Positions 4,087-30,854 of a stretch of 64,000 bases of DNA are shown piece by piece. Every line of letters starts with the position of its first letter. Position 1 is the first letter of the stretch. A program made the translations under genes and the position numbers. The DNA lies in contig CM106586.1 of NCBI GenBank assembly GCA_048013815.1, forward strand, positions 10,354,001 to 10,418,000, given 5' to 3'. The notes beneath the pieces are model-generated. The model was not told the origin of the DNA. It did not search any database and saw only the letters and a program-made list of their open reading frames with translations. The stretch is from Setoptus koraiensis. Taxonomy: Eukaryota; Animalia; Arthropoda.

Positions 4087-4457
4087 CTGCGATAACCAAT
4101 GTTCAATGTATCAATCAGCACAGAGTTGATTAATATCCGATATTATTAAATTTACAAAAAGATTGAGGGGATAGCAAACATGTTGCGATTTTCGAACGTC
4201 ACGTGTATTTTTAATCGTGTCTCGGTAGACCACCGCTAGAAGGCTCGTAACTTGGTGCCCGAAAATCACGTACGAGTCGCAGCATGTGAGCCCCCTAGTG
4301 GCGAGAAATGCATAGATATAAGTCATATGTGTGGAACACACTTTGTGGAACAGCCTCTTTTGAAAACCTTCATTATATTGGTCGGATTCAATTAATATAA
4401 GCCCTTCGGTAGGATAAAACAATACCATCGTTAATCACAAACATCAACAAAAGCACG
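4087..4457. promoter_or_regulatory. Shared divergent promoter region MRPL17 / TRAPPC6
   Basis: Head-to-head ATGs ~370 nt apart. Contains GTCACGTG at ~4198. Confidence 0.6.
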
Positions 4458-5032
4458 ATGATTGATGATTGCCTTGTCGATTTCCTTCACATGGAAGTGG
4501 TAGATACTTTCGCTAATCAGCTATGCCCACCCGATTCTAAGGTAAGATACGGCAAGAACCCCTAAACCGCTAACCCACACCTAACTCGTAGCTGACTCAA
4601 ATCTGTTCTGATCCTTTGTAATTATGTTAGGAGGCAGGATTGAACAAATTGGAGCAAGTAGGTTATACCACGGGCTACAGATACGTCGAGAAACTAACCA
4701 AAGACATGCCGAGATTCAGAAACGAAGAATTAGACATAATGAAGTTTATATGTAAAGAGTTCTGGTCCTCAATATTCAAGAAACAGATAGACAATCTCCG
4801 CACCAATAGGTCAGGCGTTTATGTCTTACATGAAAACAGGTTTAGATTCATAACGCAAATCTCTGGCAGCGAGCAATACGTCGAGATGATGCCACAGTAT
4901 CTAGCCTTCACTTGCGGCCTTATCAGAGGAGCGCTAGCTGATCTAGGTATAGAATCTTTTGTGACAGCAGAAGTTGTTTCTCCACCACAATGTCGCTTCC
5001 AGGTACAAATCCAGCGAACATTCCAAATTTAA
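4458..5032 (+). CDS. TRAPPC6: TRAPP complex subunit 6 (Trs33), exons 4458-4541 and 4631-5032
   Basis: Exon 1 MIDDCLVDFLHMEVV ends AAG|gtaaga. 89-nt intron ends ttatgttag|. Exon 2 has LEQVGYTTGYR, LDIMKFICKEFW, KQIDNLRTN, GLIRGALADLG. Confidence 0.93.
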
Positions 5033-5069
5033 TATGTAAATATATAATTAGTACAATTAAATATAGCAA

Positions 5070-8000
5070 TTATCCTGATGTCAATCTTGTTGAGAATTTT
5101 TCCGAATACAGAGGTCTAGGTCTGGATGCCGATCCCTGCGTTGGACTAGGTGTCCCCGAATGATAGTCAAATCTATTTGGCCTTGCGTTGATCGGTGTAG
5201 AAGCGAATGGGGATCCTGATATAGGACTGCTTCGCGATGGACTCTGCTGAATAAAACCTGAGTCAGTCACAAATTGACTCGACGGTTTCCTCCTACGAGC
5301 CATGTACCATTTATAAGTGAATATTGAAGCTACAGATGTAGCTATAAGGTATAAGGCAAATTTGAAGTACTCGCTAAGTCTCTGAAATAGACTAGACGTC
5401 GGGGGCCTGATATCACATTGTCCGGAAAGATCCAGTGAGACACATTGACCTTTTGGGGGAGGTATCCAATGAGCATCTTTGTTTTGAGCCACACTATCGA
5501 TCTTTGTTTCAACGCTCGACGATGGTGAAGTTTGGATATTTGGCAAATTTTTCGGCTCCTCTATGCGTTCAATCGCTGGTGATAGCGTTGTTGGAGGTGA
5601 TGGTGTGAATACTTTCGGGGATTTTGTAATAATAGGAGCTACAGAAGTTCTCGGTCGTTCAGTTGTTGTAGTTGTGGTTGTTGATGTTGTTGTTGTCGTC
5701 GGAGCTACCTTGACTGGCCTCGGTCTTGAAGGCTCGGGCACAACATTTAGATGAAGGCAAAACATGGACGAGTCTACCTCGTCACAGAATTTCATGACAC
5801 GGCTAGAAGGATGAGTTGAGAGTTCACGGTTAAATTCGGAAGCATTCATAATTGTCACATCAGAGATAACAGGAGAGCCATTAGTATCTATGCAATGATC
5901 CTCTAGACGTATAATAAATTTTCCGGGCTGCCTAGGCATAATATCAACCCTGTTTGATCCTTGCACATAAGTCACGTTTGCGTACTTCGTACCGAGAACA
6001 GATTCGATAGAGAAATGTCCAGAACCTTTCATGATTGAGAATGTGACTACGTTCTTGGGATGATTATAAATAATGGTTTTGTTTGGGTTGAAGTAAGCAT
6101 TGTCCACAAACTGTATATCTTTCTCCTCAGATAACTCTAGTTCAGGTGGTTTAGGTATGGAATTCTTCACGGAGTTCTCTAGAACAAATTGTTTGTACCC
6201 CCGAACCAACGCGTGGATCCGAGCAAATCCTTCGGACCCATTTGGACTTACTGTGATGTAATTTCTTGTTAGTTTTCTGAATCCGTGGACGGCATTAATA
6301 TCTTCCAGGACCTCGTTGCGAGAACTCAAAGTTGCAGTCCCCGTCAAAGAGAATTCGAAGTTCAGGCTGGATATATTGAAGAAGCGACGTCCTGAGTCAT
6401 CATGAATCGACACTTCGAACTTTGTAGATCCTTGAGAGCTGATAGGTATGAGATTACTTGAATACAACCCGATATCATTGAGCGGACACGAGTCTTTCAA
6501 TTGAGGTTTAAGTAAAATACTGTCTGGCTTTGCGCAGCTGAATCGAACTACAGCTTTAGTTGAAGCAGGGTTTGGTAGATTAGCTGATGGGATATTTCCT
6601 ATGCTAACGGACACATCGACATCTCCAAGACGAACACAGGTTATTCTGAACACATGTAGATCTTTGTTCAGACGATATCTATCAAGTATCGGTGTATAAG
6701 AGACAGTTTCTTCGTTAGAGAGCTCGACTTTTGTAAAGTGATCTTCAGTGCGTTGTGCAAATGGTCTTGGTCCTCCTTCAAATGCTAGTTCGAGTGAGGT
6801 TCCTAGTGCTAAAACCCCCAAGGTTTCAGGATAAACTGCCTTCAATGGTTTAAAACATGCAATAGTGGCTGTAGTCTTGAGGGGTGGTGCTAGTTTGTTT
6901 GTAGGATCTATGTAACTTATCCATACCCTACTATGACCGGGCTGGTGACATGTAAACTTGAGACTTCGACAACTTTTTGCTCGAGCGTTGGGTATGATCT
7001 CGTTTTCCTCAAAAGAAAATCTAGTCTTTTCAACTATCTCCACATTGAACTTTATCTGACTGCAATCGTCAAAGAGTCTTAAATTAGAGCTGCCCTCGGT
7101 ATCTTGTAAATCTGGTTGAGTTGATACCATGCTCGTGGTGTTCGCATAGACAGCAATTGGTAAGTAAACAATTCCACCAACCTCTGTCTCGGTCACAGAA
7201 GGCAATACATTTATATCGGCTATTCTTGTAACAGATATGAGCGCATGGCGCGTAAATACTGAGCTTTGTACGTCGGAGCAAGTTACCAAGGCAGTTCCTT
7301 CGCCCTGTGTTCGTATTTTTACGACTGATGTATCCTCGTGATCGTATTCAATATTGGCCAGATAAGTATCATTAGATAGCCACTTGTAAGTTCCAGTGCT
7401 GCCCACAGCAAAAATTTGGACACTATACTTTGGTTTAACTATTGGCAGCCATGGTAGAAGTACAGTTGAAGGTTTAATCTCGAGTGGATCATAGATATTG
7501 AGATCCTGGATCATCTCTAGAGGTAGTTCAAATTTTGCCTCTTTGGTACCAAGTAGAGTGGCTATGATTTGGCACGGGCCAGTTTTCAGGGTTCTAATTG
7601 AATGTTGAGTACCGTTTGCAGAGGAATTCTCTAAGAATATTTCAGTAGGAAATTCAACTTGAATATCAAGATTGTCCGATGGATAGATCCTGTGGTGAGC
7701 TGAGTCGAAAATTCTTATTTCTATCTCGTAATCGGTGAATTTTTGTAGCGCCCAATTGTCTCCAGGAGTGATGTGCATGGTCATGTAACTGGCCTGAACA
7801 ACATGAATGAGCGATTCTGGCTGTTTGAAGTCCTGGTCGCTCATGACATTTTTATCAACAAACCTTATTTTTGTCTCTCCTAGCTCATCGAATGCTCTCA
7901 CAGTTGACGTTGACGTCTCTAAGTCTATAAGTGATGGATTGTCCACTTCTAAATAATACTGTTCTGAGGGTATCTTGATTTTATGCGCCCTACCCTGTTT

Positions 8001-8072
8001 TATAATTCTCACATGATAGTGAATATCAGCGTAAGGCACTAGATAGACATCTTGCGATGGCACTAATTCCAG
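5070..8072 (-). CDS. NUP210: Nuclear pore glycoprotein gp210, N-terminally replaced and internally shortened; in frame with the RPN1 segment (whole ORF 8402-5070, 1110 aa)
   Basis: PSQDVYLVPYADIHYHVRIIKQG...PSEQYYL, ITPGDNWALQ, SSANGTQHSIRTLKTG, GSTGTYKWLS, LELAFEGGPRPF, KGSGHFSI match gp210 Ig-like repeats. C-terminal TM (FALYLIATSVASIFTY) is followed by an S/T-P-rich tail. Confidence 0.88.
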   Translation of the reverse strand: MELVPSQDVYLVPYADIHYHVRIIKQGRAHKIKIPSEQYYLEVDNPSLIDLETSTSTVRAFDELGETKIRFVDKNVMSDQDFKQPESLIHVVQASYMTMHITPGDNWALQKFTDYEIEIRIFDSAHHRIYPSDNLDIQVEFPTEIFLENSSANGTQHSIRTLKTGPCQIIATLLGTKEAKFELPLEMIQDLNIYDPLEIKPSTVLLPWLPIVKPKYSVQIFAVGSTGTYKWLSNDTYLANIEYDHEDTSVVKIRTQGEGTALVTCSDVQSSVFTRHALISVTRIADINVLPSVTETEVGGIVYLPIAVYANTTSMVSTQPDLQDTEGSSNLRLFDDCSQIKFNVEIVEKTRFSFEENEIIPNARAKSCRSLKFTCHQPGHSRVWISYIDPTNKLAPPLKTTATIACFKPLKAVYPETLGVLALGTSLELAFEGGPRPFAQRTEDHFTKVELSNEETVSYTPILDRYRLNKDLHVFRITCVRLGDVDVSVSIGNIPSANLPNPASTKAVVRFSCAKPDSILLKPQLKDSCPLNDIGLYSSNLIPISSQGSTKFEVSIHDDSGRRFFNISSLNFEFSLTGTATLSSRNEVLEDINAVHGFRKLTRNYITVSPNGSEGFARIHALVRGYKQFVLENSVKNSIPKPPELELSEEKDIQFVDNAYFNPNKTIIYNHPKNVVTFSIMKGSGHFSIESVLGTKYANVTYVQGSNRVDIMPRQPGKFIIRLEDHCIDTNGSPVISDVTIMNASEFNRELSTHPSSRVMKFCDEVDSSMFCLHLNVVPEPSRPRPVKVAPTTTTTSTTTTTTTERPRTSVAPIITKSPKVFTPSPPTTLSPAIERIEEPKNLPNIQTSPSSSVETKIDSVAQNKDAHWIPPPKGQCVSLDLSGQCDIRPPTSSLFQRLSEYFKFALYLIATSVASIFTYKWYMARRRKPSSQFVTDSGFIQQSPSRSSPISGSPFASTPINARPNRFDYHSGTPSPTQGSASRPRPLYSEKFSTRLTSG

Positions 8073-8402
8073 ATGGGTAAAAACTTTGGTAACTACCAAA
8101 GGTTGGGAAGTTGCACCGGCTTCAACGGGTTTAGAGGTTAGATCTATTCTCCAATGACGGCCGTCCTCTGTCTTAGAGACTGGCATCAATGCATTGGCCA
8201 GTTTTGCCTCTATGTGAGATAATCTGGACACCTGGCCTTCTTTGTCATCACAGTCAATTAAATAGGACGTCAATGGGGCAGAGCCCGTATTTTCTATAAC
8301 GATACTTGTAGTTATTTTCACCAATTGAGTACTTAATTCTGAGGTTGTTACAACTGCCACCAAGCAGCATTGTACTATTAATAGTAAGGCAGTCTCAATC
8401 AT
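8073..8402 (-). CDS. RPN1: Ribophorin I (OST subunit 1) N-terminal segment, 110 aa, forming the 5' part of a chimeric ORF
   Basis: ATG 8402, signal peptide MIETALLLIVQCCLVAV, then ELSTQLVKITTSIVIEN...RLSHIEAK...GRHWRIDL...VEAGATSQPLVVTKVFTH. This aligns with RPN1 DLSSHLAKVTAEVVL...RLAHLGV...GRFFTVKL...LDPGAKISVIVETVYTH. Confidence 0.75.
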
Positions 8403-11400
8403 GATCGCGTAATAATTATTACTAATTGTATAAATATAAAATTCCAAATGATTTGAGTGATGATATCGATGAATGGCAATGTTTTCTTGAGAAATTAAAT
8501 ATATCGTGAGGCGAACAAATGACGCACGTTTTCTGTGATCGCGCACGTAGGCCGTGAGCCATTGAAAACGATTGCGCGCCGCAACTGTAGTTTGAAGAAG
8601 GCTCAAACACATGATTCGCGTGGCTTGTGCGCCGAATCGATTCGCCATAAAGGCGCCACTTTTGAACAATTTTCGCCAATTTTGTGAGCAATGGAAGCGT
8701 TTGTCGGTGCTAGTGAAGTTGGTTTATCGGGGGCAGAGTAATTGCAGTTTATTGTGATTGGTATTAATACAAAATGGTAGCTGGATGATTCTGGTCTCTA
8801 ATGAGCTCTACAATACATACTGAAATGTAACGAGTAAATGGAGCAAGCGATGTTGCGATATAATGTGCGGTGGTCGTCTAAACGGCACTGGGCTCAATGG
8901 TCTCTCAGTGAGTTCCGGTCATCCTTTCGCCTTGTAAGTGAGAGCTGAACACTGTGATACGCGTATAATGAAGAAAATCGCACATATACAACATGGCGAC
9001 TAAGACAGGAATATTTCAAAAGTTCAATAATTGAATAGTATCGTCACAGGGTGTCAGACCTAGACGACGTGATCATCTGTGAGCTGAAGAGAGCGATCCC
9101 TGATCTGAGATCGATGATTGCTGATTACGAAAAACTTGTTATACCGACTGGTTAAAATAATCAATGATCAATTTACCCTTTAAATTGTGATTTTCATTAC
9201 ATGAGAGTTAGTCAGTAATCATGCCAAAGATACATTTTGAACCACAGCGGAAGTCAACGTAGTCGTAGTTGTTGCGTCAGTTTAGTGGATTGTTCGTCTT
9301 AGATAGAGGAAAGATAGGGCAAAAGAGAGTCTTTATAATGTATGATAATTCAATATTGCGTATCAATGAAAGTCTTCATTTGTTTGTATCTCTTTATAGG
9401 CAAAGTATTGCCATGACAAATCAAATAGGCGAAAGCGCAACGCGTTCTGTCCTATAGTCACATAATGCAATGACACACTGTCCTATTGGTGATTGATCTT
9501 CATGCAAATTGCATGATTGGATGAGTGAGTCGGATTCTTTTGACAAGATAGTTAAGATAGATAGTTTGTTGAAAAGTCACACAATATAGCAGCAATTCAT
9601 GCAACCGCCAGCAGCTTGCAGGCGGATGACATGTAAGTTTGCGATTGTGGAGATACGGCGAAACTAACAAGGAGGTCCCAAGTTGACTGGCCCTGCCACC
9701 AAAATTCACTCTCTTCATTGAATCTAGGGGAGCCCTCATATCCGAAATGTGTGTGTGTGTGTGTTGTTCCATTGTTATAATCAGATTACTATTCATCTTT
9801 TGAACTAAATCATTACATGTCTCAGTGTTCGTTTATCATTTGTACACAACAACAAAGCTCGAACAACGAGTGGTAGTAACCAACAACACCATGAACAACA
9901 ATAATAATAATAATAATAAATACAATTGACAATTGTGCCCTACTACAACCACTATATCTTGTTTTTTTTTGTACTGTATTGTGTGATTGTGCGAAGTAAC
10001 AACAACAACTTAATGGTCACGGTTAAGATGAAGGCGGCGAGAGAAAGAATTGATTTTTTCGCGCTTGAAAGAGATACACAGAGATAGTGTAGTTTTATTA
10101 TCGCTGTTGTGTGTTGTGCAACAACTATTAAAATCAAGATAGATAAGATTGTTAGTGAACTTTTTCTTTTTCTCCTTATTCTTGTTTAGTGTTGCACAGG
10201 CAGCCCATACAAATAGAGGCAAATATGAGCAAAGATATTGGTTCATTAGCATCATCAACAGCATGGCCATAACTAATGAACCTCGACTTGGCGATGGTTT
10301 GCTGCGGTTGGTGTCGCTGTTGGTGTCGCTGTTGTTGTTGTTGCTGCTGCTGTTGTTGTTTTTATTGTTGTTGTTGATCGGGGCCACCCGAGAGTGTCTC
10401 ACCAGCATCGCCAGCATAACCGGCGCAAAGCGGCGTTCGAGCGACTACCGCAACAACAACTAGTAAACTACTAGGCAAAATAGCCACTTCACGCCTCATA
10501 TTTCATCTTTATGTTAACCACAATCGCGTAATTCGCACATTGTCGTTACACACAATGTTTTGCGAAATGCAGTGTGTCGTTGCTGTTGTTGTTGTTCCAT
10601 TTGGAATTACATTATCACCGTCATTGTCATATTTGCTGCTGTTGATACAATATCGCTGCTTTCAAGTATTGCGACCATCACAGTCAGTTTTCACTTCGAC
10701 TAGCCAAAAGACGGTCGGTCCCTTTTCAATGACAATCTTCTTCTCCTTCTCCTTGCAACTTTTCTGTCTGCATGACTTTCGAACTGCAACAACCAGCCGC
10801 AACAACCAGCCGCAACAACCAGCAGCAGCGGAACATATGTATATTAGCGAGTCCTATATGGTCGTCGCACAACAATGTATGCACAATCAATAATCATCAT
10901 TCATGTTTGTTGTTGTTGTTGCTGGTTGTCACAACACACACACATACGACCTACAACTGGCAGACGATGACGATTTGTATTTTTCGGGCCAGCCACCGAT
11001 ACGAGCATGAGGAAAGCATGAGATAGAAAGAAATATGAAACACCGAGAGAAATATAAATATGAACTGAGAGTTTACACATGTATAGAGCCATGAATGAGC
11101 GTGACAATCTGCTTTGTGATCACCACCACAACCACCGGCACCACAACCACCGGCACCACAATTCACTGGCGGCACCCTCAAATAAATTAGATCGTTGTCG
11201 TTTGCCTGCCATCCAGTCATCCAGCCAGCCGAGCACAACTGTCAAACCAACTGTCTATGGCCGTTGGTCGACATAAAACAACCATCAGAAAAGAACACGA
11301 TCGTCGTGACCGAAGCCTCGCTTTTGTGGCACCAGCCAACAACAGCAACAACAACAGCAGCAACAACAACAACAGCAACAACAACAACAGCAACAACAAT

Positions 11401-15068: not shown

Positions 15069-17084
15069 TTACGGCACGAGCAGCGTCGGCGACTGGCCTT
15101 GCTCGGGCGAGCTCGCCAACCGGCCCGACTGCGACTGACTGGCGGCCAGTGCCGCCATTGCGGCCGCCTGGCGCTGCTGATTGGCGGCGGCCATTAGGGC
15201 ACAGGCGGCCGCCGGATTCAGCGAGGCCATTGCGGCCATCATGGCGGCTTGCTGCTGTTGTTGGCTCTGTTGTTGTTGTTGTTGTTGTTGTTGCTGTTGT
15301 GCACTAATCAGGCGTTGGCGGTTGGCGGCCACGGCGGCGGCCATCATGGCGGCCTGCTGCTGCTGTTGCTGCTGTTGTTGCTGGTGGTGGTGGTGCCGAT
15401 GTGATTGGTGGTTGATTAGTTGACTGAATTGATTGTTTGCCGCCGCCTGCAGCTGACTTGCTGTTGCCTGGCTCGCGGCTTGAGTGGTCAGTTGGTTTGC
15501 GCTGTTGTTGCTGCTGTGGTTGTGGTTGTTGCTGCTGTTGTGGTTGTGGTTGTTGTTGTTGTTGACTGGTGTTGCTGCTGCGGCCGCCGCCGACGCGGCG
15601 AAAATGGGCGACAAATGATTCATCAATGATTGCATATTGGCTAATTGCTGTTGCATGATCAAGGCCGAGAACGGATTTGATTGCTGCTGGCCAGACGGCG
15701 CCTGCTGCTGTTGCTGCTGTTGCTGTTGCTGCTGTTGATTCATGGCGGCCGCGGCCGCCGCTGCCGCCGCCGCAAATTCGAAGGCGGCCCACGGCTGACC
15801 GGTGGCGCCCGCCGGGTGCGGCGGCAAGGTGAGGTGTTGGGCGGCCGAGGCATAATCGGCCATGGGTAATGAGTGATGCTGCTGGTGCGGCTTGTGTAAC
15901 AGTGGCGACACTTGTGACGATGGCGCGTTATTTGTTAGCTGGTGTCGCTGTTTTTCGCTGTTGCCTAGCTGATAGTTGGGCGACCAGGGTGCTGACGCAA
16001 GGTAATTGTTGTTGTTGTTGTTGGCGTGGTTGTTGTGGTGGTGGTGGTGCTGCTGAGATCCTGCAAGTGACAATTGGTGGTTGGAGGCTGTTGTTGTTGT
16101 TGTTGTGGTTGCTTGCTGCGACTCGCTGCCGTCGAGCAGCGACGAATGGTCGGACCTGGCCGAGGGCGACGACGCTGCTGACGACGCCGCTGACGACGAC
16201 GATGACGAGGATGACGCCGACGATGTCGACGAGGGGCTCGCCGAGGGCGAAGAATTTGAGGCCTGCGAACAGTTGGACAGCTGACTAGATTGTTGGTTGG
16301 CTTGGCCAGTTTGCGCACTGTTTTCCGTTTGTTGCATCAATTGGTGGTGCTGTTGTTGTTGTTGTTGTGGTTGTTGTTTGGCGTGCGCATTCGTTTGTTG
16401 GTAGGGGTGTCGCGCCCCAATGAGACTCTCAATGCTGAAGGGCGAACACTGTTTAGTTGTTGCAGTGCCGGTTGTTGGCTTGCCGAAAGCGTTTATAGGC
16501 TGCTGCTGCTGCTGTTGTGGCGGCATGTTTATAGGCTGTTGTTGTTGTTGTTGTAGTTGTAGTTTTTGGGACGCATGTTTCGCTGAGTGCTTGTGCGAGC
16601 CCGCTTGCTGCTTTATAGGCTGCATAGGCTGCATGGGCTGCACGTCGTCGTCGTCGTCGTCGTCGCTCAGCAAATCCTCGAGATTGCCCCCCATTAATTC
16701 GGTGAATTGTTGTTTGAATTGTGCGTGCAAATGCGGATGTTTTTGTGCCAACAATTTGAAGCGTTTTCGCCGGCGCAGCAAGCTGCCGTTCTCGAACATG
16801 TCGCCCGACATGGGGTGCAGCGCCCAATAGGAGCCCTTGCCGGGCCGGTCGGGTTGCCGGGCGATCTTGATGAAGCAATCATTGAACGACAGATTGTGGC
16901 GCAGACTATTTTGCCAGCGTTGAGTATTGAGTCTATAATAGGGGAATTTGTCCATTATGAATTTGTATATATCACTTAATGTCAACATTTTGTCTTCACT
17001 ACTTTGTATGGCCATGAACGTGAGCGCGATGTAGCTATAGGGCGGCTTCTGGTCGCCGTACGTGTTTCTTCCTGGCCGCGGCAT
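15069..17084 (-). CDS. FoxB: Forkhead transcription factor FoxB (fd96Ca/b-like), intronless, 671 aa
   Basis: N-terminus [22 protein letters not shown] and forkhead domain ...[17 protein letters not shown]...[10 protein letters not shown]...[17 protein letters not shown] are diagnostic of FoxB. eh1-like [14 protein letters not shown] on the minus strand at 14707-14712. Confidence 0.95.
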
Positions 17085-18786: not shown

Positions 18787-21700
18787 GCAACAACAACAAC
18801 GGCAACAACGACGGCAACAACGACGGCAGCAGCGACGTGACGATGAAAAGAATCCAATTGAATTGTGCGTGCCAGCGAGCGTTTGTGTGCAAAGCAAACG
18901 TTGTTATTGTTTGCTCGCTGCTCTTCAGTGAGCATTGGCTATTATAATTCTAACATTAATTGTATATAAAATGTTTCACTGTTGTCGGCAAAAGTCGCTC
19001 GCAATTGACTTCTGGCCGCCAGTGTTCGGCTGTGGACACTGCAGCCACTGGCAGCGACTGTCGAGCAGCGCGACCGTCGAACAGCGACCGTCGAACAGCG
19101 ACCGTCGAACAGCGACTGTTTAACAGTGACAGCAACAACAACAGCACCAACAACAACAACAACAACAACAAGAGAGAGATTTGTGTGTGTCAAATTGATT
19201 ATGTTTACACACTCCAGGCGTCCCCACTGGCCGCTGCCCCCTGTCTATCTGGGGTATCTCGGGCGATTGGCACTCGGGCGATTGGCACTCAGGTACGGCC
19301 GGGGCACACCGTGAGTAGAGTGAGTAGATGATGCGGCGGTGGCACGGCGCGGCATCGGTCCATTTGCATTCGAGAGGCACGTTTGTGCGTGTTTGTGCTC
19401 GCATTTCGGCCCGCTTGTTGCCGATAACTTTTCATGTGTCTCATGCGCTGCCGTTGTTGCTGTTGCCGTTGTTGTTGCTGCCGCTGTTGGCGTTGTTGTT
19501 GTTGCAAGTTAAAACGATCATGATGATGATGATCTGATTTGTTGTTGTTGATCAAAGAAGCGGAGCCGCTTCGATTGTTCGCCACCAGCTAATTGTCACT
19601 GCCACTGCCTGCCGCTCACCTGAGCCGTTTCACTCCAGACCCTGCAGTCCACAGTCAGCGTCTCTGAGCCAGTGCCTGTGGCGGTCAGCTGAGCGAGCGC
19701 CGCAAACTAGCTCAGGTGAGCCAGTGGTCAGCGCTACGTGCAGCAACACGTAGCGTAGTGGTCAGCTAGGCGCGGTAACGCGTAGTGCAGTGGTCAGCTG
19801 ACCGCAAACATAAGCAACATAGCGCCTCATTAATGTGGCACCAAACACGACACGACAAAACACAAACAAGCGGCCACCATTGACAATTCACCAGCACAAC
19901 AAAGCAACACGAGCTGCGGCCAACAATGGCCGCAGCTCGTCCATTGTCAATGGACCCGGTCGTGTCATCAACAACAACAATCATCACCTTATGATCGATT
20001 TGCAACTCGCTATCGGCGCGCTGCCAGCGCCTATCGTCGTTCGCGACGAATCCACGCCGCTCGCTCCGATCGACGCGTTTCTCAGCTCATTTTATCGCTG
20101 CTCATTTTATTTTGGCTAAAATCGTCGCACTCACTCGCACTAATTTTCACCTCCAACAAACGCGCCGTGTGTCGGCGCCACTCGTGGAACTAATTCGCGA
20201 GCCAGATCAAAAGCTCACCTGAAAACTCAACACACAAACTCGCCACTCACACTGCAACTCGAACCAATTCCGACCCAAATTCAATTGTTCATCGCGCGCA
20301 CCACCAGAGGCTCTTTGTGGGTCCCATCGGCTCGCCGGCGACTTGTTCACTTCGCGAGTCCGTTGGCTAGCACCGCTAGTCGCGGCGCTGTCCAACGGCA
20401 TTGGCCGCTGGTCAGTGGGCAGCCATTAACAAACAATTGAGTCAATTTGGGCCACTTTGGCCCGAAACTGCCTGTGTGCCTGCACTGGGCCTACTACAGC
20501 GCCCTCTGTCTCTCGGAGCGACAATCTGCTGCTGGCAGCGTGTGACTCGCGAGCTGCGAGCGCTTCCCCGCCCCGACAAGCAGCCCGATCTGGTCGGGAG
20601 CCGGGCCGGAGCCCGAGCGAGCCCGATTTCGTTTTGCAATTCGAGCTTCACGTTCAGTTGCGCTTTCGGGTTTGGCCGCTCCGATTGAGCGGTGGTCAGC
20701 GCCGGTTCGGGCGCATCGGGCTACCGTGCGGGCAATGTCAAGTGAAAAGTTACGAGAGCTTCGATGAAAGAAACTGCTCGTTGGGCTTCTTTTGTGCATT
20801 GCGTCACATTGCGGCACAGTCGACCATCGGCTACCGAACGAAGCGACTTGGGCCGGTCGGACAACGATGGTCGCCGGCTCATTCACGCCTCATCTTGGTG
20901 TTTGTTTGTGCGTCTGACGGGCCGATGTCACTGTGTCGTTGTTGTCGTTGTTGCTGCTGCTGTTGTTGTTGTTGGCGTTGCTGTTGGCGTTGCTGTTGGC
21001 GTTGCTGTTGCTGCTGTTGTTGTGCAATTGCGACACCGGCGCGATTGCAAGTCGTGTTTGTTGTCGTGTTTGTTGTCGCGTTGTTGTCGTGTTGTTGTCG
21101 CGTTGCTGTCGTGCTGCTGTCGTGTTTGTTGTTGGCAGCGGCACAAAGTTGCAAATTGCCGGCCAGCTGACGGCGGCCGCCTGCGCGAACACAGTGGCTC
21201 AAGCGCAAGAATTCGCGCGGCTGTTCCGAGGCCGTTCGCGGCCGCGAACGGTGCCAGTCTCACCGAAGCGCCGCCAGTCCGAAAAGAACGCAAACAACAG
21301 CACTCACTCGCGGCCAGCAACAGGTAGGGGGAGGGGAACGCCCACTTCTCACAAGAGCGCCAATGGTAGTGTGAATTACAAAGTGATTCGTGGTGCTGTG
21401 TTCTTTTTGTGCGATTTTTGTGCTTCTTTCGCGCCGTTCGCAGCTTCTTCGTTCGGGCTGTTGGCTGCTTCTTTTTGCTGCCTCTTCGCAGCTCGCTCGC
21501 TTCTCGGCCGCTCGTCGTTTCTCGTGGCTGCCGGGCCGCCGCTGGCACGGCGCTCGGCGCGGCCGCGAGGTGTGCAAGTTGCCAAATTATAGAGCGGCTC
21601 GCTTCCTTTTTCTTTTGCTCTCTTCCTCTGTCGCTCTCTGTCAATCGTGTCTCTTTATGCTCGTCTTTGTGCTCGTCCTTGTGCTCGGCGCGGCGCGCGA

Positions 21701-22797
21701 GACTTGCGAGCGCCGGCCGGTTGGCCGACCCACTCATACCGACTCGGCGCGAAGACCGCCCAACTGCCCGCTGCGGCTGTTCGAGGGAGACTCGCAGGCG
21801 TCGCCAGTTGCGCGGCCCGCAACAGGCGGCGCACGCGATGCGACCGCGCCGCTGGCCGGCGCGTCGTGGCCGGTCGAGCCGAGCCGGGCGCTTGCACACG
21901 GCGAAAGGCGACGGGCGATAAGAGACGGGCGAAAGGCGTCGCTCGGCCGTGCGCAAAGTGCACGCAGCCGCCAACAAGTGAACGCAGATATTGCAAATGA
22001 TGGCAAAATATGGGCTGCCGCTCCGAGATTCTCGAACCGAGAATACCGAGAATGCGCTCCGAGAACCGAGAACCGAGAATGCGCTTCGAGAATCGAAGCG
22101 CTCGGAACGCACATTGCGACGGGCGCTTGGTTGGGCTGCGAGCGCCGAAGAGCGGCCGAACGCTCGGAACGGCCGAACTCGAAGAACGCACAGCCTCGAG
22201 AGAAGCCGAGAGAAGAAGAATTGCTGGCGTGTTACCATTAGTGTGCCAAAGGCAGTGTGCGACTCGCGAGCTCGCAATCGGGCCGCGGCGCCGCCAGTCG
22301 GTCTGCCAGCGACAGCAAGTGAAACCACCGATTCATCATTTGTTTGCATCGTCGTTTGCATCGTCGTTTGCATCGGTGGTTGCATCGGTGGTTGCGTCGT
22401 CCGTTCGCGTCGCTCGATGCTCGCATTCGCCTTCGAATGGCGATTGCGGGCTCGCTTGTGGAGCTTGCGCGAAGCTCGGCCGGCCGACGGGCTTGCGAAC
22501 CTTCGAAGCGCCGCCATTCGCCGCAACTTTCGACTTTGGCAGCCAATTGTTGCGAGACCTGACTCAATGGGGGCAGCCGTGTCTTTAGCAGGTTATTAGT
22601 CGTTATTAGTGCGTGCCGAGCGCCCACTAATAACGTAATCACTTTCTCGCCGGCAGCGCCACTGGACACCCGATCAATCTCGTGTGCGCCGGCGAACCGC
22701 AACGTTTGTTTGCGAGACAACACAATGCATGCTCGACAGTGTTATGATAACACGGCCCTTCGAAGCGACGGTTGCGCGTCCGAACTCGGAATTACTT

Positions 22798-22895
22798 TCA
22801 AAATTCGAATTTCGAATTTCCAGTTGCTTTACGAAATTCGAATTTCGAATTTCCAGTTACTTTACGAAATTCGAATTTCGAATTTTCAGTTACGA
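22798..22895. repeat. 33-nt tandem repeat, ~3 copies, TTCGAA-rich
   Basis: Unit gaaattcgaatttcgaatttccagtt(g/a)ctttac. Confidence 0.9.
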
Positions 22896-23892
22896 ACGTC
22901 GAAACTCGAACTCGCGATTGCAAACTTCGAACGCGAACCTCGAACGCGAGCGTCTGCGGCGAACTGCGAACGCGAGCGTCCACAGCTCGTGCGGCTGCGG
23001 CCGATTGCGCGATCCGGAGATTCGAAGATTCGATGATTCGAAGCTTCGGAGATTGGCGAAGATTCGCAAACGCACGGCCGGTCGTGGCCTCATTTGGCGT
23101 TGCGCTCCCACAGCGGCCGCATTAGGTGGCTATTAGCGCGTTATTAGCGCAATAATTACACAAAACTGTTGGCCGGGCGTCCCGGTGTCTGGCGGTTCAT
23201 TGTGTGCACTTGCCCTACACAATGAATCGGCCCGATTGGCCGCGATCGGCGCATCGGGCGGCGCGGCGCAATTGTGTCTGCGGCGATCGCGAATCCCATT
23301 CGATGTTTGGTTTCATCGGTTCCATTCGATTGTGTTGGATTGTGTTGGATTGTGTTGGATTGTGTCGGATTGTGCCGGAGAGCGGCGCAGCACGAAGCAA
23401 CAAATGGAAGCACCTGAGGAATTTCAATTACATGTTCGTGCGGGCCGGCCGAGCCTGATCGATGTTTCGTTTGTGTGAGTGCGTCGTTTCTTTTCTCCGT
23501 TCGCCGGGCTTCTCTCAGAGAAGTTCTCTGGCTGCCGAGAAAGGCCCAAAAGTGGCTGTGAGAGCCAATGGTGCACTACAGATAATAAATTGCATGTCGT
23601 CGTTGTCGGCCGGCCGTGTTTCGTGTCAGCGTGCCGCTGGTGTCGCTGTTGATTAATCATGTTTGCGTTATCAATTGGATCGATTAGCGCCCATCATTGA
23701 ATCGCAGGGAATCGCGGCGAGAATCGCGGGGCCTAATTACTAATTAGGCGCAGCTTGTTCCCGTGTTCAAGCTGTGCCGTTTTGTTGTTCGCACCATCGT
23801 TGGCATCGCATGCAATCGTTGCATTGTTACAATGCGTGCTCCGCGTCAACTTATAGCCAACAGCGCACAATGGAGCGGTACAGGTGCGCGGC

Positions 23893-23944
23893 GGCACAGG
23901 TAACACTTCTGGGCACAGGTAACACTTCTGGGCACAGGTAACAG
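23893..23944. repeat. 19-nt tandem repeat carrying CAGGTAAC, ~2.7 copies
   Basis: Unit ggcacaggtaacacttctg. Confidence 0.9.
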
Positions 23945-24548
23945 TCGCTTGACACTTGCTCGCGATGTGTCGCCGGGCGCCGCCCGGCGCACCGAGCCGC
24001 ACCGGACCGAGCCGAGCCGGGCCGGGCCTGGCCGCTCCGCGAGTGCCCACGTGAACGCGGCGCCCGCGTGAACGGGCACCGCGGACACCAAGGTCATTGC
24101 TTCGGCGCGCCGTTCATCCGCAAAGTGGGTCAGCGCACACTGACAGATGATCCATCTGACAATTGTGAGATGAACGAGCGCTCGAAACGGTCGCGCAAAG
24201 TGCAAGCGGATGATGCTATTTTGGGCAGCGAGGCCCCCGTGTTTATTTATATTTTTTATCCATTTTATTTTTCGTTTTCACTATGAAACGAGTGACACGA
24301 AACGGGCTGATGTGTACTGTCGCTCGTCGGTGCAACTGTCAACTGTCAGCAGGGCACATGTGACACAGGTGAAAATTGGCTCGAATCATTCCTTTGCTCG
24401 GCACTCAATAATAATCAACAATAATAGTATTCGGAAAGCTGCAAAAACACGCCAGAAAGCAGCGCATATTTTTGAAAATAAATACACAAACATCTGATCA
24501 CTAACATTTGACATCTGATTGCTGTCACAAATTGAATGGACTGACCGA

Positions 24549-26114
24549 ATGGACGATCGCACAGCAATTATGGACAACAGCGGCGAGCTCGCCCGCTCGG
24601 ACGAGTCCGCCGACGGCGACCCGTCGGCCGGCGCGCACTTCCAACGGGCCGGCGGACAATTGCAACGGGCCGGAGACTCGCTGACAGAAACGGGCGACTC
24701 GCTGACAGAAACGGGCGACTCGCGGACAGAAACGGGCGAGCTAGCGAATGTCGCCGGCCAGCAGTGGCACGCGAAGCGCGACACGTTTCGAAGCACCCAG
24801 TCGAATTTCGAAGACTCCTCGCCCGAACACGACCCGTCCGACGCACATTTATCCGGCAAAAACTGGCCTGACTCATCCGGCGAACACTGGCCCGAATTGT
24901 CTGACGAAAAGTGGTCAGACTTGTCGGGCGAAAATTCGCCGGACAAGCATTCGCCGGACAAGAATACGTCGAACGAGAATTCGCCGGACAGAAATTCGCC
25001 GGACGAGAATTGTTCGGCTCGCACAAACCAAGCCAATGTAAACTTTGAGCGGGCCTGCCAGCAGCTCATCGCGAGCGCCGTCGACAAACTCAAACAGACG
25101 GGCCTCATAGACGCCAGAGACAGCCCCGAGCGGCAGCGCATCATTTTGGCCCTGGTGGCGGGACTCGTAACGACTGTTTTATTAATTGTTTTCATAGCTG
25201 TGTGTGTGTGTGTGACGGGCACCGGAAACGGCGACAACGGCGACCACAACGACGACCACAAGGTGCAACAAGAGACAGTGCGAAGGCTCGAGTCGCTAAT
25301 TGAGCGCGTCAATTTATTGGACAGTGCACTGTCGCAAGAGGGCGACAAACAGTTTTTGCAGCAACTCCAACAATTAATATCCGTGTACGCCGTTGTCAAG
25401 CTGAAAGTGAGCTCGGCAAAACAGTTCTTGTCCAGCGTAAAGGGGGCCGTGAACAGTGAAATGGTCAGACTCAACGCAACCACTGCCACCGGCCAGCAAA
25501 CGGGCGACGCAACAGGTGAGCAGCAGCAACAACAACAACATAACGGCACCATTGACGACAAATACAAATTGGCATTTTTGTTTCAGCCGTTGAACGTCAC
25601 GAGCCCCGTGCCAGCGACAACAGCTGACAGCAGCACCGATGACAGCGGGCACCAGTCGACGGGTGGAGGCGCGACGGGCGACGCCGAGACACAAGCGGAC
25701 GAACAGGCAACCATTGAAACAAAATTGTTGCTCGAGACAAAACAAAATCAACAAAAACAATTGCAGTCGCTGCTGAACGGCTACGAATCAGAGATTGGGG
25801 CCATATATGAGGCCATCGAAAAGTCGTACGACCGAAGGCATCGCGTGGGCGAATGTCTCAACGGCAACATCGACAACCACAGCAACAACAAAAACGCCCC
25901 CGTAAATGGAGAAAAAGAACAGGGAGAAAACGACGACAGTGAACTGTTTGCGCGAACAGTGGCCAAATTGCGCCAGGAGCCCATCGACTTGGACCAGTGC
26001 ATCGCGTGGCTCCAGTTGTACGACACGGGCCTCAACGGGCCGGGACAGCGGTCGACGGGCGGCCCCCACGGCAAGCAAGCCAAGGACACTTCCGGTCAGG
26101 ACGGATCGCTCTAA
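24549..26114 (+). CDS. Hypothetical single-pass (probably type II) membrane protein with repeat-rich N-terminus and helical/coiled-coil C-terminus
   Basis: ~1.57-kb stop-free frame from ATG 24549. One strong TM (IILALVAGLVTTVLLIVFIAV). Non-repetitive protein-like C-terminal half. No family recognised. Confidence 0.6.
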   Translation: MDDRTAIMDNSGELARSDESADGDPSAGAHFQRAGGQLQRAGDSLTETGDSLTETGDSRTETGELANVAGQQWHAKRDTFRSTQSNFEDSSPEHDPSDAHLSGKNWPDSSGEHWPELSDEKWSDLSGENSPDKHSPDKNTSNENSPDRNSPDENCSARTNQANVNFERACQQLIASAVDKLKQTGLIDARDSPERQRIILALVAGLVTTVLLIVFIAVCVCVTGTGNGDNGDHNDDHKVQQETVRRLESLIERVNLLDSALSQEGDKQFLQQLQQLISVYAVVKLKVSSAKQFLSSVKGAVNSEMVRLNATTATGQQTGDATGEQQQQQQHNGTIDDKYKLAFLFQPLNVTSPVPATTADSSTDDSGHQSTGGGATGDAETQADEQATIETKLLLETKQNQQKQLQSLLNGYESEIGAIYEAIEKSYDRRHRVGECLNGNIDNHSNNKNAPVNGEKEQGENDDSELFARTVAKLRQEPIDLDQCIAWLQLYDTGLNGPGQRSTGGPHGKQAKDTSGQDGSL

Positions 26115-27887
26115 TGCAACAACAACAACAACAACAATAATAATGATTACACAATCACACAATAACAATAATTGATTGCGTGTCTCGCTGGCTCGATCGA
26201 GCGCCGTTGCACCCTGGCTAACAAAGCCCTGTAAGGCAAAGTTTTTTTTTTTTAAAAGTTTATAAAATAGTTTGATAATATATTTATAATTCTGATTGCG
26301 TCATCATTGTGTTTGTGCTCAAATTGTGCCAGGCGCAAATTAAATCGAGCAGCGATGCCACAGGTAACAGGTAACAGGTTGTTGTTGTCTTTGCGGCCGT
26401 CGGTCGGCCGCACGGTCACGATGAGCAATGGCGGCCGCTGGCACGCTCGCTCGCACACACGAATTAATCATTACATAACAAACAACAATGATACACCATT
26501 CAGACTGGAACCACCTGATGATTTCGATCGATCAATCCGCTCCATTAGTGCGTCTGTTGGTCTGTCCGTCGCTCTGTCCGTCGGCCCGTCGCTCTGTCCG
26601 CCGGTCCGTCGGTGTTTGCGTCGCCGCGCGGCGGTTCTGTCCGCCGCCCGATCGCCGGCTTCTCTGGCTTCGCTGACTTGGCCGGCTTCGCTGGCCGCTC
26701 CGACTGTGCGATCGCCGGATCATGCGGGCGGCCAGTGTTGCGTCACTGTTAGCGCGACAGAGACACAGTTGGCAGCGGCAACACAAACCAACAAACGATG
26801 TTTGGGGCGCATCTTCATTGCAGACGTCGCTGGCGCAGCCGGCGCGGCTATTAGTTGGGCGATAATTGCTGCCAATTGGCGGCCGTCGCATTCGAACGCA
26901 TTCTCGTTCCAAGTCGCTCCGTCGGCCGCCGTTCGAAGTCGCTCTGTCGGCCAGCGTTCTGTTGGCCAGCGTTCGAATTGCGCCTTGTAGGCGCTGTGTT
27001 GCGAATGCGCCATTCGAACAGTGCCCATTAGTTGGCACTTTGCGAGAAATTGTTTGTTGTTGTTGCCTGTTGGCCAAAACAAATCATCAGCGCCGACCAC
27101 AATCACTGACCAACAGCGTCCACTTTTTGTGTGGTCTTGCCGTGATGCCTTTCGCCCAGCGACCCGCAACAGATTTGTGTTTTTGCTGCTGCCAAATCGA
27201 CCAATATCCAGCCAATGTCCAGCCGATAGCCGCCGATGTTGCGTTGTTGTGCCGGCCAACAGCCGACAGCCAGCGGCCGGCGCAACAAGGCAACATGCAC
27301 GCCCACCTCGCCGCGAACGCTTCTTTCAGTGCGACTGCAACATGCTCTCGAGTGTCCAGCTCACCTGTCGAACTTCATCATGCACACACAATTATAGGTA
27401 TTTGTGCGTGTGTGTGTGTGTGTGCCGAAGAAGAGCAAAACAATTTCTTGTTTTGGCCGGTTGTTGTTTTTTCGCGCTTGTCGCTGTTGTTGTTGTTGCT
27501 GTTGTTGCAATTGGCGCTTGTTGCAGCTCGAATTTGTCTGTTTATCGATTTGCAGATTGCTCCGCGGCGATAAACACACACACACATGCTGCAGCAAAGG
27601 CAAGCAAACGGTAGGCATCGGTGTCAGTGGCAACATTGGCAAGCTGTCAATTTGTTGTTGTTATGTCATATCAATGTTGCGCATCGCATTCATTGCTGAC
27701 CACTGGCGCACTCTCTTCGGCCAGCACCTGTCCGACTGACCGCGCCGGCTTACCTGTGTCCGCTTCGGCTTACCTGTGCCCACCTCGGCGCTTGCCTGCG
27801 CGCCGCAACAGTCACTGTTGAACAATGTCAATATTTATACCGAGTGCCACTGTCGGCTGGTGTGTGTGTGTCGGTTGTTGCCACCAG

Positions 27888-27971
27888 CCACAGGTGAGTC
27901 GCCGGCCACAGGTGAGTCGCCGGCCACAGGTGAGTCGCCGGCCACAGGTGAGTCGCTATCCACAGGTGAGT
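27888..27971. repeat. 18-nt tandem repeat carrying CAGGTGAGT, 5 copies
   Basis: Motif starts at 27891, 27909, 27927, 27945, 27963. Confidence 0.95.
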
Positions 27972-30854
27972 TGCTGGCGACACTTGCCCGCGTTGCGGAC
28001 GAACCTCGGGCCTCTCCCTCCGTGCCCGCGCGTCCGCACTCACCGGGCATGCGCTGCCGGTCGCTCCCGCACTCACCCGGCGGGCGCTGCAAGTCGCTTG
28101 CGGTCGCTCCCGAACGCCCCCGAGTTGCTGCCGGGTCCGAGCGACAGTCGCTGCGAACCAGGCAGCGAGCCCGGGAGGGGCCCGAAGAGGCCGATGGACG
28201 CTGTAAGTGGCAGATGACATGCCCGTACGGATGTGCGGAGCCGGCTGAGACGGGCCGCGGTGTATACGGGCAATGTGTGTACTGGCGCGGGCGGACGGGC
28301 AGGCACTCTGTTTGAAACAACTTGCGGGCCACAAGTTGTGGCCCGCAAGTGGCCCGCAAGTGGCCCGCGAGTGACTTTGTTTGGCACTGACGGGGGGCGT
28401 GGGCGAGACGGGAAATTGAGACGATACAGGCACAATGTGCGTCCGATTGGCGCAGTGTTTGCAGTGTCGCACGAGGGCCCAAAGTGTTGCGGGCGCACGA
28501 GCGCCGGCCAAAGCGGCGAGCGGCGGCCCGAGCCAAACGACAGCGACGGCGCGAAAATGGGGCGGTCCCCCGACACCTCGTGCAGCTCGTATCACCTGGC
28601 TGCGGGGGACAAAGCGAGTGATCGTGTAGCACGCATTCTTTTTGTTTGCAATTGGCACTTTGGGCCAATTTGGCCGCGTGTTGGCAGCGCGTATCTATTA
28701 TTATCTGGTGGCACTCGTGCGAACGTTTGTGTGTATAATGAGTCGCTTCGATGATGAGACGAACACAAAACAAACGAGCTGACGTTCGCGCCGAGAGCGC
28801 CGCTCGGGCGAGCCGACAATCGCCGATCGCCGATTGTCCGAACCTCGGGCTGAGAACCGCGAACCGCGAGCTGAGAGCCGAGAGCCGCGAATCGCGAATC
28901 GCCAGCCGAGAGCTGCGAATCGAGTGAGTTCCCAATCGAACGGTTCGAGTGAGAAAGTCAAATCTCTGGCCGCTTTGTTTGCGCTTGGGCACGCGCAAAC
29001 AACCTATAGACTGCACAGTGCACACGGTGCTCGTGGCATATAGGCGACACAACAATGGCGAGCAGCAACAAAAAACACACTTTCGGCGCAGTGCGACCGT
29101 TGTGGCGCAGCGCGACCGCTGTGGCGCACAGCAAACACCGGGTAACGGCGGCGACGGCAAGCGCCGGGTAGGGGGACAGACGGGCCGGCCCGGCCCGGAT
29201 TAGCGGTACCAGATGATGCGGCACCAGATGAGCGGCAGCGGCCGGCCGGCGAGAGGCGGCCCGCTAATGAGCACTTGCGAGTGGCCAGTTGGGACGCGGC
29301 AGGATGTCGGCGCAACTACGTGACCGGTGCGGCCGCCTCTCGGTCTGTCGGTCTGTCGGTCTGTCGCTCGTGTCGCGTCGCTCGGGTCGCGGCGCTCGGA
29401 TCGCCTCTTGGTCTATCTGCGGCTCGTATCGCGTTGCCCGCGACGCAGCCAGCGGCGCGATGCGAGCCGCAGATAGACTAAGAGGCGTCATAATTAACAC
29501 TATTAACGCGGTAATCACGATATGTAATTATTTGCACGTACCGGCCGCCGCGGAGGAGCTGCCGTTGTTGCAATTTGTTCCTGTTCGTGTTCTTTTGCAC
29601 AACGCACACACACACACACGCCAGCCGCACAAAGAAAAGAAGCCGCGTCACCTTTCCAGCGCGCGTCCGAATTTTCGAAAATTCGAACATTCGAGCGTCC
29701 GAGCGTCCGAGCGTCCGAACGTCCGAGCGCCCGAGCGTTCGAACTCGAAGCCGCGGCCAATTCAGCTGCCGCTCGTCGGTTGTTGCCGTTAATTGCAAAT
29801 CATAATTTGCGCCATTAGAGCCCATTAAGTCGGCCCTCTCGCCAGCTGACCGGTGCATATGCGCATGATGCAAAGTATATTTGTATTTAACAGTATACAA
29901 GTAATAAGTAAGTAAGTAATATTTGTATTATTATTGTGAGTGCACGGGCCGCCAAATGGAGCGAGCCGCGCCGCCGACCGCCTGTTGCCCGTGATCGCCC
30001 GCAACATTCAGCGCGTTCAATGTGTCGGCCCGCCGCGGCCCGCACCAGCGCCGCACCATCCGCGCTCACAAGTCAGGACTCAGTCATGACTCACAAATCC
30101 GATCAAACATGACGATGCTCAGCTGACCTCACCTGGCGGCCCGACCGGCCGACATCGGGGCGTCAGAGATGGCGCAGCGACGTGCTCAAATGGCGATACT
30201 GTAACTTGTAAATATTGTAATTGGCCGGCGGCAGCTTGCGGCTCGCTATCACAACAATCGTATGATATTGTATGTTTACAATAATTATCTGCACAATCAT
30301 TATTATATTATCGCTTTGTAAACAGTTGACTCACAGCTCACAGTTGAGCGTTTGCCCGGAAGGGGAGTGGCGCTCGCGTCGCGGCCGGTCCGCGTCGGCA
30401 CTCGGTCAGCCGGGCTCGGTGCCGATTTGCCGACCGAGTTCAGGCTTTCAGACTCACAGAGTCAGGTTACTAATCAAGTGAGGCCCAGAGAAACAACGAC
30501 GCCAAAACAGCTGAGCGGTGCAGAGCTGTCATGGCTGTCAGTGGCCGATGTTGTGCGAGTCATCAGCTGGTCGCGTTGTCGTCGCTGTCGGCGTTGTCGC
30601 TGTCGGTGTCGGTGTTGTTGTTGTCGGCGTTCCTGTGGATTTAGCCAGAGCAAAAGAAGCGAGCCGCTGCCAGAGTACGCACTTCCTGTGTTACGTCAGC
30701 CGGCTGCCGCTGTGTCGAGCAGCGGCGGCGGCGACTGTTTGCGCGGATTAGCCGCAAACATACGCCACTGGCGGCGCTGGCTGGATGGATTAGTCGGGCT
30801 CGCATGTAAATAAGCGGCTCAGCGCGGCTGCCCGATGGCGCCGGCAGAGCGCCG

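Follow-up and report, generated by a model that had tools for sequence, protein, structure and literature searches.

An ancient ribophorin I-NUP210 chimera in acariform mites, a candidate miniaturised gp210

Does the long open reading frame (ORF) that begins at 8402 in a 64-kb stretch of Setoptus koraiensis DNA (contig CM106586.1, positions 10,354,001 to 10,418,000; this whole stretch is the window, and positions below refer to it unless another contig is named) encode a genuine fusion of ribophorin I (RPN1), a subunit of the oligosaccharyltransferase (OST), with the nuclear pore glycoprotein NUP210 (gp210), or is it the product of a deletion or a faulty assembly? The original prediction described an intron-free chimera and left both explanations standing. 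Its description of the ORF proved accurate in Pfam, phmmer and tblastn searches and in a direct reading of the codons, and the gene is real, transcribed and of single origin. We further propose, with a probability of roughly 0.6, that this genuine ancient chimera would act as the miniaturised gp210-type pore-membrane glycoprotein of its lineage, with a swapped distal cap. No published description of an RPN1-NUP210 chimera was found in full-text literature searches.

The chimeric gene and its junction

In the ORF listing, a single open frame on the minus strand, which carries all parts of the gene, extends over 5070-8669, and the ATG at 8402 gives a protein of 1110 amino acids followed by a stop codon (5070-8402), as uninterrupted as had been claimed. 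From its N-terminus, the product comprises a signal peptide, an RPN1-derived cap, the immunoglobulin-like (Ig) domains 3 to 9 of NUP210, a Cys-containing segment, a Thr/Pro/Ser-rich stalk, a transmembrane helix and a tail, and is predicted to be a type I membrane glycoprotein. Pfam recognises in it Ribophorin_I and the NUP210 Ig domains 3, 4, 6, 7 and 9 (E 3e-24 to 3e-11 for the Ig domains); the fifth Ig domain is seen in the precomputed Pfam hits of homologues and not in the query's own list. When mite RPN1 and NUP210 were compared by tblastn with the 64-kb window, RPN1 matched only at 8339-8070 and NUP210 only at 8084-5886. No further piece of either gene was found elsewhere in the window by this search, and the earlier statement that it holds no remainder of RPN1 is thus upheld. 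The start codon and hydrophobic signal peptide (8340-8402, residues 1-21) form the top Kyte-Doolittle stretch of the protein, and homologues have a hydrophobic leader at the same position although its sequence is not conserved (20% identity).

The two parts meet at the predicted codons CAT CTG GAA TTA GTG CCA (8075-8058; H110-L-E-L-V-P115), which were read directly from the sequence. In order to follow this junction in other data, we aligned over 4400-9600 the Logan contigs of four runs (X1, X2, X4 and X8), the first three of which represent three independent studies. The 16-kb contigs of X1 and X2, from different studies, cover the whole examined stretch with one or two differences, and a 4-kb contig of X4, from the third study, covers 6274-9600 and spans the junction. 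In X8, a 312-nt contig at 7848-8159 crosses it with no joint and no mismatch. Because the adjacent TRAPP gene appears in spliced form in this run, with an 89-nt GT..AG skip (4539 to 4629), X8 was treated as RNA-derived. The chimera is therefore transcribed across the junction, as observed in this RNA-like run, and around 8070, where a check of reads had been called for, the contigs of all four runs bridge the position without a joint.

A true fusion is hard to tell from a transcript-merging artefact when the genome is compact (PMC7738191), so conservation across species must be checked. A search of 5.8 billion proteins retrieved around 25 homologues of 971 to 1171 amino acids, with 45-53% identity and 97-100% query coverage, and those that were looked up are single ORFs on gene-dense contigs. 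None carries a descriptive name from any source, and one is labelled "hypothetical protein". The motif T-H-L-E-[LI]-V-P lies at the same place in 24 of the 24 homologues that are complete at the N-terminus, and its presence in so many diverged proteins excludes an assembly error or a private deletion. The other explanation left standing at the outset, a collapse of the assembly or an individual's allele carrying a deletion between adjacent RPN1 and NUP210 genes, has in its favour only the unusual architecture and the fact that X1, the best DNA run, is possibly the source of the assembly itself. Against it stand the contigs of other studies and of the RNA-like run, which bridge the junction with 0-3 differences, the identical junction in 24 homologues at about 50% identity, and the agreement between the trees of the RPN1 and NUP210 halves (see below). 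We consider it refuted for practical purposes, and the prediction of a real fusion is confirmed by the same independent assemblies, RNA-like contig and homologues. The gene is marked as a fixed fusion in that both of its parent families can be identified, the in-frame junction is the same in 24/24 homologues and an RNA-like contig runs across it.

The degree of conservation varies strongly along the protein. Mean pairwise identity, calculated by region among 17 chimeras, is 76% in the RPN1-derived domain, 79% in Ig3, 59-70% in Ig4 to Ig9, 53% in the segment after Ig9 (residues 841-890) and 58% in the tail, and falls to 26% in the linker and 20% in the signal peptide. This pattern indicates purifying selection on every folded part of the predicted protein, the cap included. 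With 76% identity, compared with 26% for the linker, the RPN1-derived cap is a constrained functional module and no leftover leader. The original prediction that RPN1 contributes a promoter and a signal peptide is thus to be corrected, since the RPN1 part is a complete and strongly conserved beta-sandwich domain.

Parentage of the two halves and origin of the join

The cap (8073-8339, residues 22-110) is homologous to ribophorin I/Ost1 and has the same fold (human RPN1, 6s7o chain E; yeast Ost1, 7oci/6ezn; mite RPN1 proteins P0031 and P0032). The predicted likeness of the first 110 residues to ribophorin I was confirmed by Pfam, by phmmer and in a tree, and the proposed search with hidden Markov models did return Ribophorin_I at residues 17-110 (profile positions 6-105 of 437), albeit with 24.5 bits, just under the 25-bit cut-off. 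When the first 117 residues (8052-8402) were searched with phmmer against 1.8 billion representative proteins, the chimera family came first, followed by three true ribophorins I (P0031, P0032 and P0036) which themselves score 281-473 bits for this family in Pfam. The best of these, P0031 (491 amino acids), shares 47% identity over residues 20-111 (library-wide E 1.6e-10; E 1e-18 in a pairwise BLASTP), and its nearest named relatives are the RPN1 of trombidiform and oribatid mites (Halotydeus, Leptotrombidium, Dinothrombium and Oppia). Identity of the cap to acariform RPN1 is 43-47% over about 90 amino acids, with shared indels. In a tree of the RPN1 domain, which is short (90 columns) and poorly resolved at its inner forks, the N-terminal domains of the chimeras are monophyletic (100/97) and lie inside an acariform RPN1 clade (91/97) that leaves out ticks, spiders, scorpions, insects and outgroups.

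The predicted structure of the cap is consistent with this origin. AlphaFold2, run on the cap alone with a 25-sequence alignment, gave a seven-strand beta-sandwich with a predicted local distance difference test (pLDDT) score of 84. The top four Foldseek matches in the PDB are human RPN1 (template-modelling (TM) score 0.67-0.68, root-mean-square deviation 2.6-3.4 Å, 22-24% identity) and the next are yeast Ost1 (TM score 0.66-0.67), whereas unrelated sandwiches reach 0.4-0.55. In VIA-align, Ost1 and RPN1 occupy ranks 1-7 (Z 5.9-6.8), and the cap maps to residues 43-143 of human RPN1. Since these Z values are modestly above background, the structural match supports the sequence evidence and is no stand-alone proof. 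The cap profile found nothing at E<=1 among the PDB sequences, so that kinship to the solved RPN1/Ost1 structures is visible at the level of the fold only.

Could this domain be instead a highly diverged Ig1 or Ig2 of NUP210, resembling RPN1 by chance or convergence? The Ribophorin_I score below the cut-off, the lack of a PDB sequence match, the middling fold Z-scores and the location of the cap at the Ig2 position in the predicted model would fit such an origin. However, beyond the chimeras themselves, the matches among 1.8 billion sequences are RPN1 and bacterial repeat proteins, with no NUP210 Ig1 or Ig2; the 43-47% identity to mite RPN1 extends over about 90 amino acids with common indels; the cap nests within the acariform RPN1 tree; and the seven best structural matches are all RPN1/Ost1. 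A descent from Ig1 or Ig2 is thus highly improbable. The bacterial matches (P0030, P0033 and P0035; DUF7507/DUF11/CARDB-like, E 1e-16 to 3e-4, several stretches each) may reflect a common beta-sandwich motif, I-E-N-x-G-x-x-P, and no specific kinship.

The second half (5883-8072, residues 111-840) corresponds to Ig-like domains 3-9 of NUP210, as indicated by Pfam, by alignment with human NUP210, by a tree and by VIA-align. In a phmmer search of PDB sequences, residues 107-839 are collinear with residues 239-964 of human NUP210 (7r5j; E 2e-78), close to the start at about residue 235 that had been predicted. These roughly 730 aligned residues have Ig3-9 in the canonical order found in human NUP210 (7r5j/7r5k) and in the NUP210-like protein P0158 of Leptotrombidium deliense. 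Full-length relatives also carry Ig1, Ig2 and Ig10-16; in the ORF, none of these domains gave a Pfam hit, and similarity to NUP210 ends at residue 839. The "truncated gp210" of the original prediction is therefore truncated indeed, but at both ends, because Ig10-16 are gone too and have given way to a mucin-like stalk. A 283-residue AlphaFold2 model (pLDDT 80.6) superposes on NUP210 (Foldseek E 3e-14; VIA-align Z 14.6 to 7r5k), and a search of the ESM Atlas found nothing beyond NUP210.

In a tree of Ig3-9 (705 columns), the chimeras form one clade (support 100), sister to full-length acariform NUP210 including that of Leptotrombidium, with a joint support of 100. The protein of the window is sister to all other chimeras in both the RPN1 and the NUP210 trees, and this identical position indicates that the two halves share one history. 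The nesting of both halves in acariform families with matching topology points to one ancient fusion, and the event is not private to this genome but ancient and lineage-wide.

When the chimeras are compared with their two parent families, the crossover falls between H110 and L111, where a leucine is common to the two. At this point acariform RPN1 reads E-A-V-F-T-H followed by L-L-x-P-x-P and acariform NUP210 reads V-I-A-N followed by L-x-L-x-P-x-H-D-V-Y-L, whereas the chimeras have T-K-V-Y-T-H followed by L-E-L-V-P-S-H-D-V-Y-L. The join falls at the boundary between Ig2 and Ig3 of NUP210, and the residues before it belong to the last strand of a beta-sandwich in each parent. In the 283-residue model, one continuous strand passes from the cap through the junction into Ig3. 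This common last-strand position, the continuous strand and the superposition on NUP210 suggest that the swap was made at structurally equivalent positions. The microhomology invoked by the original prediction is found at the protein level only, as a beta-strand followed by L-x-(x)-P in both parents.

As to the route, we propose that in the ancestor of one compact, intron-poor acariform lineage the 5' end of a copy of the RPN1 gene would have been joined inside the NUP210 coding sequence, bringing along the leader and the first luminal beta-sandwich of about 90 residues. At the DNA level, duplication of a 5' segment of RPN1 with a breakpoint inside an exon is a candidate. The tandem arrangement of RPN1 and NUP210 that had been suggested as a source is unsupported, the two genes being on separate contigs in a relative with full-length NUP210 (sample ERZ25073694) and not near each other in L004, L005 and L008. 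Exon shuffling at an existing NUP210 intron was also rejected. The only nearby intron of the full-length relative lies about 60 codons upstream, in Ig2, so that the join does not match a known NUP210 intron, and the sequence equivalent to the junction is inside one exon in two intron-bearing relatives. On L005 (7390-13316), a contig of an acariform relative, the full-length NUP210 gene has a single intron of about 50 nt in Ig2, followed by one exon of 1771 codons, and RPN1 of this relative is on another contig of the same sample.

The C-terminal part and a possible role at the nuclear pore

Downstream of Ig9, the conserved segment at 5733-5882 (residues 841-890) contains two near-invariant Cys and has no Pfam hit; it is possibly a remnant of the start of Ig10. 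It is followed by the poorly conserved Thr/Pro/Ser-rich linker (5367-5732, residues 891-1012), delimited by its composition and its 26% identity. Between residues 891 and 1000, 50 of 110 positions are T, P or S, and the linker is probably an O-glycosylated stalk. An (ACN)n run at about 5662-5701 encodes a poly-Thr stretch in this part. Hundreds of unrelated contigs align there and depth spikes to 20,000-30,000, which is a low-complexity mapping artefact and not a copy-number signal.

A single transmembrane helix (5304-5366, residues 1013-1033), seen as a hydrophobic stretch and by profile-profile matching, precedes a tail of 77 residues (5070-5303 with the stop codon, residues 1034-1110) that would be exposed on the pore side or in the cytosol. 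The transmembrane and juxtamembrane region matches NUP210 C-termini in hhalign profile-profile comparison (probability 88%, E 3e-6), pairwise similarity being weak. The chimeras end in R-P-L-Y-[ST]-E and the full-length acariform NUP210 tails in R-P-L-W-[ST]. With moderate confidence, the anchor and the tail may thus be regarded as NUP210-derived. Like NUP210, the chimera is predicted to have a type I topology, with one transmembrane helix near the C-terminus and a short tail, rich in Ser and Pro, whose end resembles RPL[WY][ST].

The chimera also differs from both parents. Compared with ribophorin I, it retains about 100 of the 437 profile positions, and its similarity to RPN1 stops at residue 110; because the remaining luminal domains, the transmembrane helix and the cytosolic part of RPN1 are absent, it cannot be a usual OST subunit. 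Compared with NUP210, it has 1110 instead of about 1900 amino acids, an RPN1-derived sandwich in place of Ig1-2 and a Thr/Pro/Ser-rich stalk of about 120 residues in place of Ig10-16. In the architecture proposed for the luminal ring of vertebrates, the elongated protomers, with an arm, a hub and a leg, are made of the 15 Ig domains of GP210, and their tips are at the pore membrane (PMC7264284). A ring made of the chimera would therefore have to differ. Fewer repeats suffice in yeast Pom152, a luminal ring protein of the pore membrane with a shorter string of luminal Ig-like repeats. Unlike the chimera, Pom152 is anchored in the membrane by its N-terminal part, the reverse topology, and it lacks an RPN1-derived module.

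In the role that we propose, the protein would be anchored at the pore membrane through the retained NUP210-type anchor and tail, and the Ig3-9 array would serve as luminal scaffold. The loss of six Ig domains would be compensated in length by the extended stalk; by estimate and not by computation, a heavily O-glycosylated stalk of about 110-120 residues could span roughly this distance. At the membrane-distal tip, Ig1-2 would be replaced by the RPN1-derived sandwich.

Several points weigh against this proposal. Nuclear-pore localisation of the chimera is a prediction only, and its C-terminal part shows modest homology to that of NUP210 (88% probability; pairwise E 1e-4). The Z-scores of the cap against RPN1 (5.9-6.8) are little above those of unrelated beta-sandwiches. 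The lineage that bears the chimera is probably that of the eriophyoids, but this assignment is drawn from genome style (a compact, mostly intronless layout), from the acariform affinity in the trees and from published descriptions of such mite genomes (PMC7738191; bioRxiv 10.64898/2026.08.24.746826). Finally, a full-length NUP210 may coexist with the chimera, which would then be a paralogue with another role, and a full-length NUP210 is present in at least one acariform whose genes are intronless, placed in the sister clade outside the chimera clade.

The last point bears on whether the chimera replaces or accompanies an ordinary gp210. As a lineage-specific paralogue beside a full-length NUP210, it could have a different role in the endoplasmic reticulum (ER) lumen or in secretion, for example in the handling of glycoproteins through the RPN1-derived domain. 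The cap equals the Ig domains in conservation, the chimera clade has a long stem branch (0.81) in the NUP210 tree, and luminal domains of Ost1/RPN1 are reported to bind glycopeptides and malectin (PMC7226087), all of which would suit such a paralogue. However, no full-length NUP210 was found inside the chimera clade among the sequences retrieved for the search and for the Ig3-9 tree, though intronless ORFs of that size are retrievable from the same kinds of sources. Moreover, the chimeras appear to retain an anchor and a juxtamembrane region of NUP210 type, together with the terminal RPL[WY][ST] motif, and the clade is placed where an early-branching acariform orthologue would be expected. Coexistence of the chimera with a full-length NUP210 is consequently possible but on the unlikely side, and the chimera is rather probably the sole, remodelled NUP210 orthologue of these mites.

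The lineage may also keep a normal RPN1. A canonical short RPN1 (P0032, 444 amino acids) lies on an intron-poor, gene-dense contig of run SRR33927463, in the same accession series as run SRR33927557, from which the chimera P0011 comes; this suggests, without proving it, that RPN1 itself has been retained. Because Ost1/RPN1 luminal domains are linked to glycopeptides and malectin, a new binding function of the cap is conceivable by analogy. The chimera could then be the only gp210 left and its cap might preserve a surface of RPN1 type that binds glycopeptides, malectin or OST partners, a combination that we regard as speculative and improbable.

Surroundings of the gene and significance

On the plus strand at 4400-5032, the window contains a TRAPP-subunit gene with an 89-nt GT..AG intron (4540-4628), the joint of which is seen in X8. 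The same contig continues as far as the 3' end of the chimera, which is encoded on the other strand, so that the two genes converge and almost touch. In two contigs from different samples (L001, 7429-13066, and L010, 623-5381), the chimera is immediately preceded on its upstream side by two 7tm_1 receptor genes. This synteny is not common to the window, in which the neighbours of the chimera are TRAPP, MRPL17 and TTL genes. Further along, a block of about 36 kb (14000-50000) has 51-61% GC between flanks of 37-45%. It contains a forkhead-domain gene on the minus strand (15069-17084), and on both strands there are several long ORFs in which Pfam recognises nothing; these may be low-complexity coding sequence or non-coding DNA.

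The chimera provides a clean natural case of domain replacement in a structural nucleoporin, in which a domain of an OST subunit was placed on a half-length gp210, fixed and maintained under selection throughout a diverse lineage of mites. If it is the sole gp210 of these mites, it would define a minimal functional gp210, made of Ig3-9 and an anchor, and would show how far the luminal ring of an animal nuclear pore can be reduced and rebuilt. Should the cap in addition have kept an RPN1-type binding surface, the luminal scaffold of the pore would be physically coupled to N-glycosylation and quality control in the ER, and this would be one element of a broader reshaping of the pore and OST proteins of a miniaturised animal.

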